Made by a program: the position numbers and the translations under genes. From Prasinococcaceae sp. CCMP 1430 (lineage: Eukaryota; Plantae; Prasinodermophyta): a stretch of DNA of 64,000 nt. Position 1 is the first letter of the stretch. Each line of letters starts with the position of its first letter. The notes under the pieces were generated by a model. The model worked only from the letters and a program-made list of their open reading frames with translations, was not told the DNA's origin and made no database searches. Shown here one piece after another: positions 7,457 through 52,572 of the stretch. The stretch covers positions 264,733 through 328,732 of the forward strand of contig RQSC01000005.1 of assembly GCA_013416795.1 (NCBI GenBank), in the 5' to 3' direction.

Positions 7457-8935
7457 CGTCGGGGGTGGCCAGGTTGATCCAACGCGGCAGGGTGAGGTCC
7501 GTCGTGACGGTGCCGGTGGTGTCGCGGTGGATGACGATGTCCTCCTCCTCCAGGTTGGGGTCCGCGTATGCGCTCTCCATGATCAAATTGAGCACGCCGC
7601 GGAGCTCCTCAGTGGTCATCGTGCGGCCGTCGCCCACGTCTGATAGGTTGTTTCGCAGGTGGTCCTCGAGCTCGCTGCGCGTGAGAGTGTTGTTCTTGTC
7701 GTTGTCCATCTGGTGGAAGACGAGCGCCGCCGTCATTGCGTTGACGGCGAAGCGCGCCTGCCGCCGGCGCGGGTACAGACGCTCGAACAGGAACTCGCGG
7801 TACATTTTGGCCTTGTCAGCCATCGACCACGTGGCCGCCGGCCAGTACACCAGCGCGATGAGTTTCTGCACCCAGCCCTGGAAGTGCGTCGCGTAGTACG
7901 TCACGAAGGTGGTGCAGAAGCCCAGCATGAGCACGCCCTGGGTGATGGCGGCGACCAGCTGGCCGAGGTTGGGCGTGCCCATGTTGCCACCGCCCTGGAA
8001 CGTGAGCACCACGCCGTACCTGTACACGTCCACGTGGTCGAACACGTCGTCGCTCACGCCGAGCCCCATATCGGAGAGCGCGGCGCTCTGGTGGCCGTAG
8101 TGAATGCTGGGGCCCACGCTGGACCACTGCGAGCGGATGGCGTGCAGCTCCAGCACGGCCACCGTCGGCGCGTTCCTCGAGCTCAGCGTGCGCTCGCCGC
8201 CCGGCTGCAGGTCCCAGTTGTAGTAGCGAACGTTGAAGGTCACCTTGAGGCCCGCCAGGCGGTAGTGCGGCGTGGTCGGGTCCTTCGCGTCCCAGCGTTC
8301 GTCCAGGCTGACGCCCGTCCAGGTCAGCACGTCCTCGAGCGTGAGCGTCACGGCCGCCTTGCTTTTCCCGCGGTGGTCGAACTCGGCGAGGTTCTGGTTG
8401 CTGTCGGCGACCCGCACGTAGGTGTAGTCGGGCAGCTTCGTGCCCTCGGTGTGCACGTACGAGTGCGTGAAGTAGATCTCCATCTCCTCGGGGGCCGCCA
8501 CCAGTCGCGTGGTGTTCGAGCCGCAGACGCACTTCTGCGGCGGGGCCTCGATGACGTCCTCCACGCACTGCGCGGGCTTCGTGTTCGGTTTGGCGCAGTC
8601 GTACTGCCAGTACCGCAGGATCTGTTCGGACGTGATGATGGAGAAGTGCTCCTCGCCCTTGACGAGGCTCTGGTCGAAGGTGTGCAGGTCGCAGTCGTTG
8701 TCGCCCGGCTGCAGGTTCCAGAAGCCGTCACGCCAGTTGTACTCCGGATTGTTGCAGTAATCGCAGAGCCCCCTGGCGCACCGCGAGGCCTCGAACGGCT
8801 GGTTCGCGCTCGGCTGGCCGTATATCTCGCCCAGGATGAAGGAGGGCGCCGACATCATCAGGAAGCGCTGGTTCGCCACGAGGTCCCAGCCGATGTAGAC
8901 GATGACGAGGGCGGACAGGGTCCATAGCAGGACGC
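7457..8935 (-). CDS. P2X-receptor-like cation channel with a C-terminal EF-hand; 5' exon(s) unresolved, 3' end cut at the n
   Basis: TM1 (LLWTLSALVIVYIGW), Cys-containing ectodomain, YRLAGLKVTFNVRYYN, YRYGVVLTFQGGGNMG before TM2, and EF loop DNDKNNTLTRSE; CAG acceptor ending at 8936. Confidence 0.75.
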
Positions 8936-8946
8936 CTGGGAGGAGC

Positions 8947-8995
8947 GGGAGCGCGGCAGCGCGGCAGCGCGGGAGCGCGGGAGCGCGGGAGCGCA
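8947..8995. repeat. 8-bp tandem repeat AGCGCGG(C/G), about 6 copies, in the P2X intron
   Basis: Read directly from the sequence. Confidence 0.8.
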
Positions 8996-9753
8996 GAGGC
9001 ATTTGCGCGTGCGCGTGCGTGGCAAGGGACAAGGGAAGTGCGTTTTGTGTGTGTGCGGCGTGTGTGATCCGTCGCCTGTCAGCAGCACGCAGCGGGGAGC
9101 GCGGCGCGGCGGTCGGCTCTCTGAGGCGCCGCGCCGGCGAGCGCGTGAGCCCGTCGCGCGTCGCGCCAACGAGGCGTGCCCGCAGGTGCTGCCGCCTGCA
9201 GGAGCGAGGCGCGTTCCCGCGATCGCAAGCGCCGCGCCGCGCCCCCCAGCGTGGGGCGCCCACCGGCGTTGTGAATGCCAGCCTACGCCTGCGCCCACAA
9301 CGGCCACTCGCGAAAAAGACCGGGAGACCGATTGCGCGCGCGCATCGCAGGCGCAATCTGCTGCCATCGCATGCAAAAACCTTGCTCGTGCTGACCGGCC
9401 GCTCGCCCCTGTCCCATGCCGTCGCCCCGTCCTCGCGCCGCTTTTAGGGTCCGTTGCGCCGCGCGCCGCCGCCCGCCGTCTCGCTGCCGCCGCTTGCGTC
9501 GTGCGCCGTGCGCGCTGCCGCGACGAAGCGCATGCCGCGTCAGAGGCACGAAGGCTGCGCTCTAGAGCTGGCGCTGATGTGCGAACCAAAATTTCCCCCT
9601 GTTCCACCACTCGCCCGAGGCGAGGGTGACGTTCATGTCGGAACTGCCATCAACCTCGTAGGTGATTGAGTCGCCCATCGTGGTCTAGCCGGCGATGGTC
9701 TCCTAGGCAGACCCATGCGCCTCCCTCCTCCGCCCCACCCCAAAATACTCACA

Positions 9754-10396
9754 GGAGTACAACCTGCCAGAGGATGTGCGTCGATGCAGGCCCTGCTGCT
9801 GCTGTCGCGCGGACTTGCAAGCGCATGCGCGCCCGAGCCCGTGTCTGCGTTGTGCTCGGAATGGCCCATCGCGAGTTCGTGCGCCGGCCGGAGCGCGCTC
9901 GACCTCTTTGCGCCCGCGTTGTGCTCGGAATGGCCCCTCGCGAGTTCGTGCGCCGGCCGGAGCGCGCTCGACCCCTTTGCGCCCGCGCTGACTGAGGCGG
10001 CGCGCGCCAAACGCGCGTTCGCTCGCTCGCTGCGTCTCGCGCTCCATGCAGAGGGCTGCCAAGTTCATCCTGCGCGCGCTCGACAAGGCCATCGAGAAGA
10101 AGGAGCTGGCGAAGGTCGGCCAGTCGTACGACCTGCCGAAGAAGAAGGGCGGGAGCAAGACACCCTCGAAGGCTGCTGCGGCTGCGAAGGCCAAAGCGAC
10201 GCCCAAGAAGGCGGCGGCCACGCCCAAGAAGAAGGCGGCGGCCACGCCCAAGCCGCCCGCGTCCAAGGGCAAGAAGAGGTCAGCGGCCTTCATGTCGCCG
10301 CAGGAGAGGGCGGCGGCGTCCAAGAAGGCGGCGACCTTCGAGCTCGCGCCGCCCCTCCCCGCAAAGTCGTCCAGCGGGTGGTGTTCCATCATGTGA
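9754..10396 (+). CDS. Linker histone H1-like protein with a C-terminal CaaX box (CSIM); 5' exon(s) unresolved
   Basis: Micro-exon EYNLPED spliced to RAAKFILRALDKAIEKKELAKVGQSYDL (end of an H1 globular domain), then a K/A/P-rich tail with TPKK motifs; ends TGG TGT TCC ATC ATG TGA. Confidence 0.65.
9847..9987. repeat. 69-bp near-perfect tandem duplication inside the H1-like gene intron
   Basis: GCGTTGTGCTCGGAATGGCCC...CTTTGCGCCC at 9847 and 9916 with two mismatches. Confidence 0.9.
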
Positions 10397-11172
10397 GGCG
10401 TGGGCGTGGATTCTCTAACACACACACAACGCGTGGCCCGCACGCGCGCGCGGTGGGCGGCGCTGTATACTCTCTCTCTAGTCTGCACGCCTGCCGGGGC
10501 GCGCGCGCGGCTCAACGGCCGCCGGCGAAGCGGTGCAGGCCGCGCTAGCACGTGCGCCCGCCGCCCGACGGCAGAGCAGGAACAGTAACACGCAACTCGG
10601 GCGACGCCGAGCGCACCGCCCCGGTCGTGCTCGCGCGCGCAGCGCACTCCCGCCGCCGCGGGCTCTCGCCCCTCAGTGGAAGCCCTCAGTCGGCGTCGCG
10701 CGGGGCGTCCGTCCGGACCCCCGCGCGCCGTCGCTCGCTCCTCGGCGACGAGTGCGCAGCATCGCAGCCCGCTCAATGCGCATGCCGGAAGCTGTGCTGC
10801 CGAGGCACACGGACGGGGCAACCCGGTTCGTACACGCCATGCTCAGGGATTGACCAGATCAAGCATTCCCGTTATTAGCGAGTACACCCAGGGTCGAGCG
10901 GCAATATTGGTACTGAACGCTGTCTCCGGCACGCGACGCACGCACAGCCCACGCGCTCTGCTCCGGGAGCCACAGCGCGCGCCGCGGCCCTGCCGTGCCT
11001 CCTCCCCGTCCCGTCTCGTGGGCACGCACGCGCCGGCGCGCCTCCCACCCCCCCCCCCCCAACCCCCCGCCCTCCAATCGAACACACCCACACGAGCTCC
11101 AGGGCGCGCCCTCGGACGCGCGGCGGCGACAGCGGCCGTGCCCGGACTCGCGGGCGGGCCGGGAAAGCGCTG

Positions 11173-49225: not shown

Positions 49226-52200
49226 ATGGATGACCAGTACGACGAGTTCGGCAACTTCCTGGGCGAGCTCAGCGACGGCGAGGGGGGGCTTGATGATGGA
49301 TTCGACGACGATGGCGGCCTCGCCGACGAGGAGCTCGACGAGATGGAGCGGCGCGCCGCAGAGCGCGACGCTGGCGGCGACCTAAACGCGGGCGACGAGG
49401 GCGCCATGGAGGTTGATGCCGTGGCGAGCACGGCAGTGGTGCTGCACGAAGACAAACAGTACTACCCTACAGCCGAAGAGGTCTATGGCCAGGGTGCGTT
49501 GCGCGCGCGCCAGCGCGCCAGCGCTGCGATGCGCCTCGCAGCGCCTCGCAGCGCGGCGCTCGGGCGGGGCCGGCGTGCTCTGGGCATGTGCACTGTGGTG
49601 CGACACTGCCGCCATGATCGCGTGCACGAATGCTCTGCGCTGCACTCGCTCGCCAGCGGGGCCGAGCAAACGCCCAGCTTTGGCTCCCTCGCGGTCGGCG
49701 TTTTGCGATCTGGTGCTAACGCCGCCCACTCGCCCATCCTCACCTCACGGCTTGCGGCCTTGCGCGCCCTTCGTGCGCAGGCACGGAGGCGGTGTACCAC
49801 GACGAGGATGCGCAGGACCTCAATGTGCCTCTGCTCGCGCCGAAGAAGGAAGCCGCGACCACCAAGATTGCCGCGGCCGCGAAGGAGACCGCCGCTGAGG
49901 ACGACGGGGCCGCCGAGGATGAAGAGGACTTTCCGATGGTGTGCAACGCCAGCTTTCTGCGCGGGCTGAGCTCCACACCGGCGGTGTGCCGCAACGTGGC
50001 CTTCGTGGGGCACCTGCACCACGGCAAGACTGCGGTGCTTGACATGCTGGTCCGCGAATCGCACCGAGCCGATGCACTGCCGCCGGGCGGCACAGGTGCG
50101 GATCCGCTGCCAATGCGCTACACCGACGCGCGCGAGGACGAGCGCGCGAGGCGGATGAGTGTGAAGCTCACGCCCATCACGTGTGTGGCTGAGGGCGGCA
50201 GGGGAAAGAGCTACGCGCTTACGGTGCTCGACTGCCCCGGCCACGCCGATTTCTCGGACGAGCTGGCGGCGGCGGGCAGGATCGCGGACGGCGCGGTGGT
50301 GGTGGTCGACGCCGCGGAGGGCGTGATGCTCAGCACAGAGCGCGCGCTGAAGGCGGCAGTGCGCGAGGGGCTCAAGGTGTGTCTCGTGATCAACAAGCTC
50401 GACCGCCTGGTGACCGAGCTCAAGCTGCCTCCAAACGATACTTACTTCAAGATTAAGCACACCATCGAGGAGGTCAACGCCATCCTGGCGGGATGCACGA
50501 GCGGTGTGTCGGGGGACGGGGTGACACAGCGCGTCGACCCTGTTGTCGGCAACGTGTGCTTCTCGAGCGCGTCGTACGGCTTTTGCTTCTCGTTGCTGTC
50601 GTTCGCGCGTTTGTACGCCGACGTGCACGGCATGCCCGTTGACGCTAGGGCTTTCTCCGCACGACTTTGGGGGGACATGTACTACAATCCGGCCACGCGC
50701 GGCTTTCGGAAAAAGCCCCCTGCCGAGTCCATGGAGCCCAAGCGGTCGTTCGTCGAGTTCGTCCTCGAGCCCATGTACAAGATCTTCTCGCTCTGCGTTG
50801 GTGAGCACCCCAAGTCAGTCGCGCGCGCGCTCGAGACGCTTGGTGTGAACCTCCCCCCAGCCGCTTACAAGCAGGACGTGCGGCCACTCCTGCGCGACGC
50901 CTGCGTGGCCGTCTTCGGTGACATGTCGAGCCTTGTCGACATGATGGTGGAGCACGTGCCTGCGATTGACGAGGGCGTCGCTGCCAAGGTGGACCTGCAG
51001 TACACTGGACCCTCCGAGGGGGTTCTCGCCACGGCAATGCGCAAGTGCGACCCGGCGGGCCCGCTAGTAGTGCACGTGACGAAGCTCTATCAGCGCGGCG
51101 ACGGCTCGTGCTTCGATGCGTACGGCAGGGTCATGAGCGGCACGCTGCGTACCGGCGCGGGCGTGCGCGTACTGGGCGAGGCGTACTCACCCGAGGACGA
51201 GGAGGACATGGCGGTCAAAACGGTGGAGGCTCTGTGGCTCTATCAGGCACGGTACCGAGTGCCTGTGAGCGAGGCACGTGCGGGGCAGCTGGTGCTCATC
51301 GGTGGCGTGGATGCCACCATCTCGAAGACCGCGACAATCATCGCAGAGGAGAGCGAGTTCGATGAGGAACCATACATCTTCCGGCCGCTGCAATTCGACG
51401 CGCGCTCGGTGGTCAAGGTGGCCGTGGAGCCGCTCAATCCGTCGGAGCTGCCCAAGGTGGTGGAAGGCCTACGCTCTGTGAACAAGAGCTACCCGCTGGC
51501 TGTGACCAAGGTGGAGGAGAGCGGGGAGCACACCATTCTGGGCACCGGCGAGGTCTTCCTGGACTCGGTGATGCGAGATCTGCGCGAGATGTATTCCAAC
51601 GTCGAGGTCAAAGTCAGCGACCCCGTCACGTGCTTTCGCGAGTCGGTCGCGGAGACGAGCTCGCTCAAGTGCTACGCCGAGACGCCCAACGGAAAGAACA
51701 AGCTCACCATGGTGGCGGAGCCGCTCGACCGCGGACTGGCGGAGGACATCGAGGGGGGCGCAGTGAGCCTCGACTGGCCGAGGCGCCGCCAGGCGTCTTT
51801 CTTCACCGAGAAGTACGAGTGGGACGCCCTTGCAGCGCGCTCGGTTTGGGCGTTCGGCCCCGAGCCCGCCAACGGCCCCAATGCCTTCCTTGACGACACG
51901 CTACCGTCCGAGGTCGACAAATCGATGCTCAACGCCATCAAGGACAGCGTGGCGCAGGGCTTTCGCTGGGGTTCGCGCGAGGGCCCGCTGTGCGACGAGC
52001 CTGTGCGCGGCGTCAAGTGGCGGCTGCTTGACGCGGTGGTGGCGGATGAGCCCATGCACCGCGGCGGCGGCCAGGTGATCCCCACGGCGCGTCGCGCGAT
52101 CTACTCGTCGTTCTTGACTGCCGCCCCTAGGCTGATGGAGCCCGTGTACCACGTGGAAGTGCAGACGCCCGCGGATTGCCTGAGCGCCATCTACACCGTG

Positions 52201-52572
52201 CTCTCCAAGCGGCGCGGCCACGTGCTGGCGGACACGCCCAAGCCAGGCACGCCCGTGTTCTCGGTGAAAGCTTACCTACCGGCAATTGAGAGCTTTGGCT
52301 TCGAGACGGACCTGCGGGTCCACACGCAGGGGCAGGCCTTCTCGCAGATGGTGTTTGACCACTGGGCGCTGGTCCCGGGAGATCCGCTCGACAGGGGCGT
52401 CGTGCTGCGGCCGCTCGAACCCCAGCCCACACAGCATCTCGCGCGCGAATTCACCGTCAAGACGAGGCGGCGCAAGGGCATGGCCGAGGAAGTCAGCGTG
52501 TCCCGTTTCCTCGACGACCCAGCTCTGCTCGAGCTCGCGCGCGCCGACGAGACGCTCGCGAGCATCTTGTGA
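49226..52572 (+). CDS. EFTUD2: U5 snRNP 116-kDa GTPase Snu114; exons 49226-49493 and 49781-52572
   Basis: MDDQYDEFGN, VVLHEDKQYYPTAEEVYG, GHLHHGKT, DCPGHADF, INKLDR, TDLRVHTQGQAF and KTRRRKG. Confidence 0.97.

Follow-up and report, generated by a model that had tools for sequence, protein, structure and literature searches.

A constrained linker-histone-like gene with a farnesylation-type C-terminal box in Prasinococcaceae sp. CCMP 1430

How chromatin is anchored at the nuclear periphery of green algae is an open question, since lamins and NMCP/CRWN proteins are both missing from them. A locus in Prasinococcaceae sp. CCMP 1430 raises the question of whether a linker histone could carry a lipid anchor of its own. 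The stretch analysed, here called the window, comprises 64,000 nt of contig RQSC01000005.1 (positions 264,733 to 328,732; assembly GCA_013416795.1), and the locus lies at 9754-10396 of it. A sequence-only reading of this region described a linker-histone-like protein ending in Cys-Ser-Ile-Met (CSIM) and proposed it as a chromatin tether at the inner nuclear envelope. CSIM is the C-terminus of prelamin A and a substrate of farnesyltransferase (FTase). The locus was found to hold a real, constrained gene. Its product appears to be H1-like with a translated farnesylation-type box, and a membrane tether may reasonably be inferred from it. The absence of both lamins and NMCPs has been reported for Chlorophyta (PMC11604088), which agrees with the earlier statement that green algae are without lamins.

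The coding part of the last exon was located at 10052-10396 on the plus strand and consists of 114 codons and a TGA stop. The frame opens after a stop at ~9992 and closes at the TGA at 10394-10396. The open reading frame (ORF) at 10046-10396 (+) has a translation that includes KFILRALDKAIEKKELAKVGQSYDLPKKK, followed by a Lys/Ala/Pro tail. Read from 10052, directly 3' of a CAG acceptor, the product is RAAKFILRALDKAIEKKELAKVGQSYDLPKKK. A putative helix 3 and wing of a winged helix (RAAKFILRAL...KVGQSYDLPK) occupy 10052-10141 (+), with a pattern like that of H1 helix 3 and a hairpin. No amino acid variation was seen across haplotypes in this segment. AlphaFold2, run on the exon 3 product alone, predicted a confident helix at residues 2-25 (predicted local distance difference test score, pLDDT, of 85-94) and no hairpin. 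The Lys/Ala/Pro tail follows at 10142-10279 (+). It holds a KGKKR basic cluster and three full sites of the cyclin-dependent kinase (CDK) type, TPSK at 10160 and TPKK at 10199 and 10220. Internal repeats of 21/24 nt in the tail encode ATPKK(K)AA. Residues 20-76 of the exon 3 product have a net charge of +17 and the tail was predicted to be disordered by AlphaFold2. A non-basic stretch of 34 residues (SAAFMSPQER...PPLPAKSSSGW) at 10280-10381 (+) would form a flexible linker ahead of the Cys; its sole amino acid polymorphism is Pro to Ala at 10298. A short helix was predicted within it at residues 83-91, with the remainder disordered. The CaaX box Cys-Ser-Ile-Met is at 10382-10393 (+), with the Cys at 10382-10384. 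The end of a globular domain, the Lys/Ala/Pro tail with TPKK sites and the terminus SSSGWCSIM before the stop, all described from the sequence alone, were thus read in 10052-10396 (+). The 116-aa ORF starting with the ATG at 10046 was rejected as the whole protein, because the L001-L005 haplotype has GTG in place of this ATG and indels between haplotypes disrupt the frame upstream of it.

The last exon is a real coding exon on three independent grounds, namely codon bias, population constraint and RNA. The G+C content at third codon positions (GC3) reached 92% in the Lys frame, compared to 53% and 58% for the two alternatives. A verified exon of the Snu114 gene in the window, used as a yardstick, has a GC3 of 85%. 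Only one relative of the ORF turned up in the databases, a prokaryote-style ORF call made on Tara Oceans contigs (Tara Oceans/Logan). Its 90% cluster holds five protein haplotypes on twelve contigs (L001-L012). Variation was counted on the ten contigs aligned to the window, with at least five haplotypes among them; L002-L004 were left out. In the last exon 4 of 345 columns were variable, two of them synonymous and two changing Pro to Ser/Ala in the tail. The micro-exon described below had no variable column (0/21). The introns had ~58 substitution columns in 950 (about 6%) and many indels in the same alignment. When the window was compared to L001 alone the difference was 0.58% in the exon and 3.1% in the introns (Fisher P = 0.0045). 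The protein haplotypes differ at two tail prolines only.

RNA was found over the same exon. A 281-nt contig from RNA library X1 spans 10136-10416 without gaps and runs through the stop codon, with one further synonymous site in the last exon. X1 also contains a spliced-looking contig of the next gene, and the library is therefore regarded as genuine RNA. Metatranscriptome X3 has a contig over 10116-10266. In X1 and X3 alike, the introns next to the exon and the spacer downstream of it have no coverage. Shown here is a real gene that uses the Lys frame and, in wild populations, evolves under purifying selection. Two short contacts of another X1 contig, at 10072-10090 and 9455-9472, were dismissed as chance matches of 18-19 nt from another gene. 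The +1 frame of the last exon (10052-10419) is also open throughout, with a protamine-like Arg-rich translation and a TAA stop at 10417-10419. It was rejected as the coding frame with a GC3 of just 53%. An (AC)n run at 10417-10428, 20 nt 3' of the stop, is one AC unit longer in some haplotypes than in others. The X1 contig over the stop ends at 10416, just 5' of this run.

The CaaX box lies in the frame that is translated. The Cys is exactly four residues from the translated C-terminus in the 92%-GC3 frame. The box follows the farnesyltransferase rules, with an aliphatic residue at a2 (Ile) and Met at X. It is preceded by PPLPAKSSSGW, and AlphaFold2 predicted no secondary structure past residue 91 (pLDDT ~60). 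The box is identical in all ten contigs. The last 36 codons, which include CSIM, encode the same residues in all ten, and the lone nucleotide change there (10360, in L010) is silent. The terminus noted in the sequence-only reading therefore stands: it is in the coding frame and invariant across haplotypes, and the one RNA contig that covers it (X1) retains it, so it was not spliced out there. If the protein is made as modelled, its farnesylation is likely.

No exon that could supply helices 1 and 2 of a globular domain is present in the window. The 5' exon that was missing was found on the Tara Oceans contigs, at 80-195 of L001 and 94-209 of L007. It is carried by L001-L004 and, in a different haplotype, by L007, and its ATG lies ~760 nt 5' of the micro-exon. 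The product starts with Met and a SAPKTP tail, continues with SHPGY and a helix/Gly-Lys/helix pattern ending in EIVQFAK, and is followed by a GTGCGC donor. As read from the sequence it resembles the front half of an H1-type winged helix. GC3 of exon 1 was 100%. The exon is identical in the two haplotypes, and the intron diverges from 7 nt beyond the donor onward. This first exon is new here and extends the H1-like reading of the gene.

The absence of exon 1 from the window was traced to a junction at 8937-9097, seen from Tara contigs, an X3 contig and an X7 transcript contig. Alignment of L001-L004 and L007 to the window begins no earlier than 9088 and extends rightward from there, and the 300 nt upstream on these contigs, which include exon 1, were found nowhere in the 64-kb window. 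An X3 contig tracks the window across 8859-9097 and then departs. On the other side a minus-strand P2X-like gene has an exon end at 8936. A same-species transcript contig from X7 continues past this point and codes for KLGIIKDWRL, and the letters coding this peptide are not present anywhere in the window. Both breaks fall on a short GC-rich repeat of the GGGGAGCGCGG type. On the simplest reading the assembly appears to lack a segment at 9081-9097 that carries the first exon of each of the two divergent genes. Alternatively, the sequenced strain may truly have lost it by deletion. An assembly gap is preferred because the neighbour's transcribed 5' exon is missing at the same point.

Between exon 1 and the last exon lies a 21-nt micro-exon at 9755-9775 (+). 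It is preceded by CACAG| and followed by |GTGCGT, and is invariant in the six contigs that cover it, with variable flanks. The start at 9754 given in the sequence-only reading is explained by this block, which begins at 9755. In phase 0 the micro-exon reads EYNLPED, a reading slightly preferred by codon usage; entry from exon 1 in phase 2 would give (R)STTCQR(M). In the EYNLPED frame a Tyr falls at what we take to be the place of the conserved Tyr of H1 domains. Read from the sequence alone, helix 2 would run directly into helix 3 if the micro-exon were left out, and the spacing of a normal winged helix is obtained with it. With the micro-exon included, the conserved Ile of helix 2 and the wing are as far apart, to within one residue, as they presumably are in plant H1. 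The verified Snu114 intron in the window has a GTGCGT donor and a CAG acceptor, so these site types are right for this genome.

The gene modelled from these parts would have three exons and encode a basic protein of ~160 residues with the layout of a short linker histone. The modelled protein has an isoelectric point of 10.35 and contains 19% Lys, 22% Ala and 9% Pro, with a mass of ~16.6 kDa (model A). An 8-residue N-terminal tail is followed by a winged-helix domain of ~70 residues spread over exon 1, the micro-exon and the start of exon 3. The Lys/Ala/Pro tail comes next, and then a Ser/Gly/Pro stretch ending in CSIM. The protein thus has the tripartite layout of H1, with (S/T)PxK sites in a Lys/Ala/Pro tail and a domain that opens at residue 9 with SHPGY.

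A mechanism can be proposed for such a protein. Farnesylation of the CSIM Cys would be followed by removal of the SIM tripeptide and methylation of the Cys. Farnesylation is expected because CSIM is a farnesyltransferase-type box with Met at X and Ile at a2, as in prelamin A. The basic tail would supply nuclear import and DNA binding. Together the lipid and the tail would keep the protein, along with the nucleosomes it binds, at the inner nuclear membrane, and phosphorylation of the tail by mitotic CDK would be the likely release switch. Farnesylation with membrane association was judged to fall a little short of an even prospect, and tethering at the nuclear envelope is plausible from the sequence features. 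The full proposal is that, in an early-diverging green alga without lamins or NMCPs, a farnesylated linker-histone variant links nucleosomes directly to the inner nuclear membrane, with its lipid as the anchor. CDK phosphorylation of the TPKK tail would free it at mitosis, and it would be a minimal, single-polypeptide substitute for the chromatin anchoring of the lamina. In this complete form it is tentative and, on balance, unlikely.

Several observations weigh against a lipid-anchored linker histone, and they bear in part on the fold and the gene model. The claim that the protein is linker-histone-like was only partly upheld. The architecture agrees and was strengthened by exon 1 starting with SHPGY, whereas the profile and structure searches with half-domains gave no H1/H5 match. 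Each half was scanned separately against the Pfam Linker_histone profile (PF00538) and neither matched at E <= 10. PDB sequence searches with the half-domains found no solved H1/H5 structure. In favour of an H1-like protein, 92 of the 100 ESM Atlas clusters nearest to exon 3 are Linker_histone, at scores of 0.87-0.89 which are below the tool's own trust level and make this a lead only. These look-alikes were probably helped by the Lys/Ala/Pro tail. For exon 1 the nearest named clusters are winged-helix (HARE-HTH) N-terminal fragments. The half-domain negatives, the HARE-HTH clusters and look-alikes driven by the tail would agree with a generic winged helix, such as a HARE-HTH-like one, joined to a basic tail and lying outside H1/H5, which would make the protein a different DNA binder with or without a lipid. 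That explanation is improbable. SHPGY stands right after a short N-terminal tail, a KVGxSYxLP-type wing is followed by a TPKK-rich tail, and the helix spacing is H1-like once the micro-exon is counted. The protein is therefore called H1-like here and is a candidate member of the H1/H5 family. No histone 3' stem-loop was matched in Rfam and the fold of the 3' untranslated region was not significant (z = -0.76). The gene model itself has a conflict of one base. The exon 1 donor, AAGAG|GTGCGC in both haplotypes, leaves two codon bases, and the EYNLPED reading needs a clean boundary. The in-frame alternative with all sites canonical, (R)STTCQR(M), enters exon 3 at 10054 through a weak GAG acceptor (10053/10054) just behind the strong CAG. 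The four strongest canonical sites taken together put exon 3 in the Arg-rich +1 frame. Exon 1 is not in the window's own assembly and no junction-spanning RNA was found among the RNA contigs examined. A gene that is decaying or mis-modelled, with exon 3 not joined in frame to exon 1 or with the locus non-functional in the sequenced strain, would fit these points and is very improbable. In contrast to the variable introns, all three exons show little or no variation, the 92% GC3 singles out the Lys frame, and the break shared with the transcribed neighbour suggests an assembly gap. The Lys frame of exon 3, and with it CSIM, is retained in all viable splice models.

The remaining points bear on the lipid. 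By chance, 3 of 607 six-frame ORF ends in the window (0.5%) were CaaX-like and 4.1% ended in Cxxx. Such an end on any one protein is therefore uncommon, which speaks for the box, yet about 0.5-1% of proteins would carry one by chance, which amounts to dozens per proteome. The prenylation enzymes are not encoded in this 64-kb window. The nearest Lys is 9 residues ahead of the Cys (-10 from the C-terminus), so that the polybasic stretch is not adjacent to it. No prenylated H1 or other linker histone was described in the literature searched, in line with the earlier remark that H1 prenylation was not known. Conservation of the Cys, on which the sequence-only reading was to be judged, was seen only among near-identical haplotypes. 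It is invariant in every same-species haplotype seen and no orthologue was found outside the species, which makes the conservation trivial so far. A word-indexed search with exon 3 returned only P0001, an ORF call from the same species. A phmmer search of exon 3 against 1.84 billion representatives gave 0 matches, the gene itself included, and is a weak negative since the query is mostly low-complexity. JGI metagenomes held no exon 3 homologue, the exon 1 homologue search gave no candidate, and synteny through the neighbouring EamA/SLC35F gene led to nothing in JGI metagenomes. The protein could accordingly be a soluble H1-like variant in which CSIM is incidental, with no useful modification or with a Cys used for disulfide formation or acylation. 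This explanation is somewhat unlikely. CSIM is, to our knowledge, an exact and validated FTase box, and here a flexible Ser/Gly/Pro linker with predicted disorder stands ahead of it. H1 tails do not typically have a non-basic extension like this one of 34 residues, yet it is unchanged across haplotypes save for the one Pro-to-Ala change. The protein could also be farnesylated without tethering chromatin to the envelope. The lipid would then serve the endoplasmic reticulum or plasma membrane (polybasic and farnesyl together, as in K-Ras), protein contacts or nuclear import. A strongly basic tail with a CaaX box would suit this, and plant NAP1;1 and AP1 are, as far as we know, farnesylated and nuclear with no membrane-tether role. 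It was nevertheless judged decidedly improbable. A winged helix with an H1-type tail would predict strong chromatin retention, KGKKR-type basic clusters favour nuclear import, and farnesylated nuclear proteins are reported to bind the nuclear membrane directly (PMC2947476).

The introns of the gene have features of their own. The remainder of intron 1 is at 9088-9754 (+), with its start outside the window, and is collinear with 302-853 of L001. It shows ~2-16 substitutions per 100 nt, lowest near 9300-9500, with frequent indels between haplotypes. The segment 9300-9609 is less variable, with 9 substitution columns in 300 nt compared to 10-16 per 100 nt nearby. Metatranscriptome X2 has a contig of 220 nt there, at 9396-9609, with neither an ORF nor an Rfam match. 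It may represent an RNA made from the intron, a regulatory block, or no more than unspliced transcript or carried-over DNA. About 115 nt of intron 1 at 9610-9724 are unique to the window and absent from L001, L005, L006, L007 and L011. The minus strand of this part has an ORF-like translation, MGDSITYEVDGSSDMNVTLASGEWW, and 9687-9733 is identical to the end of an unrelated 680-nt same-species transcript contig (X7). The segment may have arisen as a copy of part of a gene or by insertion of a small mobile element. Intron 2 is at 9776-10051 (+), with 27 of 278 columns variable and frame-breaking indels between haplotypes. It contains a 69-nt tandem duplication at 9847-9987 (97% identical), which is single copy in one environmental haplotype (P0123). 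Indels in intron 2 open and close spurious long ORFs, which metagenome gene callers report as 'proteins' of 154-202 aa. The 202-aa 'protein' P0001 was rejected as one such read-through of intron 2, open by chance in some haplotypes only.

The wider window places the organism in the green lineage. The gene for Snu114/EFTUD2, the GTPase of the U5 small nuclear ribonucleoprotein, is at 49226-52569. It has one verified intron at ~49493-49780 with donor G|GTGCGT and acceptor GCGCAG|G. The best named matches of its 49720-52569 part have ~60% identity and are spread over green plants and green algae alike. A stramenopile origin, to which the first Atlas match had pointed, was rejected on these matches. 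A relative of 71% identity (P0003) was found in Logan/ENA assemblies, and therefore a sister species is present in public data. The window has a G+C content of 68% and relatives occur in Tara Oceans samples. Prasinoderma coloniale has a G+C content of 69.8% and best hits split evenly between chlorophytes and streptophytes (PMC7455551). The G+C content of the window, the Snu114 matches and the Tara relatives fit an early-diverging marine green alga of the Prasinoderma type. Very high summed depth was seen at 11035-11077 in three RNA runs (up to 2262), with many contigs of 31-33 nt carrying 3 mismatches each over a low-complexity stretch rich in proline codons. This depth is probably cross-matching from other organisms and not expression of the locus.

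If the lipid-anchored reading is true, no simpler tether could be conceived than a linker histone that brings a lipid anchor with it. This would be a kind of histone modification that the literature searched does not describe, and such a protein would offer a compact tool for artificial tethering of chromatin to membranes. If the Cys is incidental, the gene would be a divergent H1-like variant of local interest.

Among known systems the closest in layout are the linker histones H1/H5 (PF00538), especially the short plant and algal variants. They share the short N-terminal tail, the winged helix of ~70 residues opening with HP-x-Y, the K-V-x-x-S-Y/F-x-L wing, the Lys/Ala/Pro tail with (S/T)PKK CDK sites and an intron inside the coding region of the globular domain. 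In contrast to H1/H5 the domain described here is too divergent for half-domain profile matches and the tail is short, at ~46 residues. It is followed by the 34-residue non-basic stretch and CaaX box, which were found in no H1 of the literature searched, and the histone 3' stem-loop was not found by Rfam. Prelamin A has the same C-terminal tetrapeptide, and the same outcome would be expected: a farnesylated protein at the inner nuclear membrane in contact with chromatin. Unlike prelamin A and the B-type lamins, this protein has no coiled-coil rod, Ig fold or filament-forming potential. No lamin or intermediate-filament match was found in Pfam, and the only helices predicted for exon 3 are the two at residues 2-25 and 83-91. 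A protein of this size could tether chromatin and could not form a lamina. The plant proteins NAP1;1 and APETALA1 (AP1) are farnesylated nuclear proteins that bind chromatin or DNA and have a functional CaaX box. They belong to other families (a histone chaperone and a MADS factor, respectively), and we know of no role of their farnesyl group in tethering chromatin to the envelope. Drosophila Kugelkern is reported to be a farnesylated non-lamin nuclear protein that binds the nuclear membrane directly (PMC2947476). Reports on Kugelkern (PMC2947476) and Dictyostelium NE81 (PMC3258179) indicate that a nuclear localization signal and a CaaX box are enough for placement at the inner nuclear membrane, with the farnesyl group binding the bilayer directly. 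These two proteins are without a histone-type DNA-binding domain, whereas in the protein proposed here chromatin binding would sit in the same small polypeptide as the lipid.

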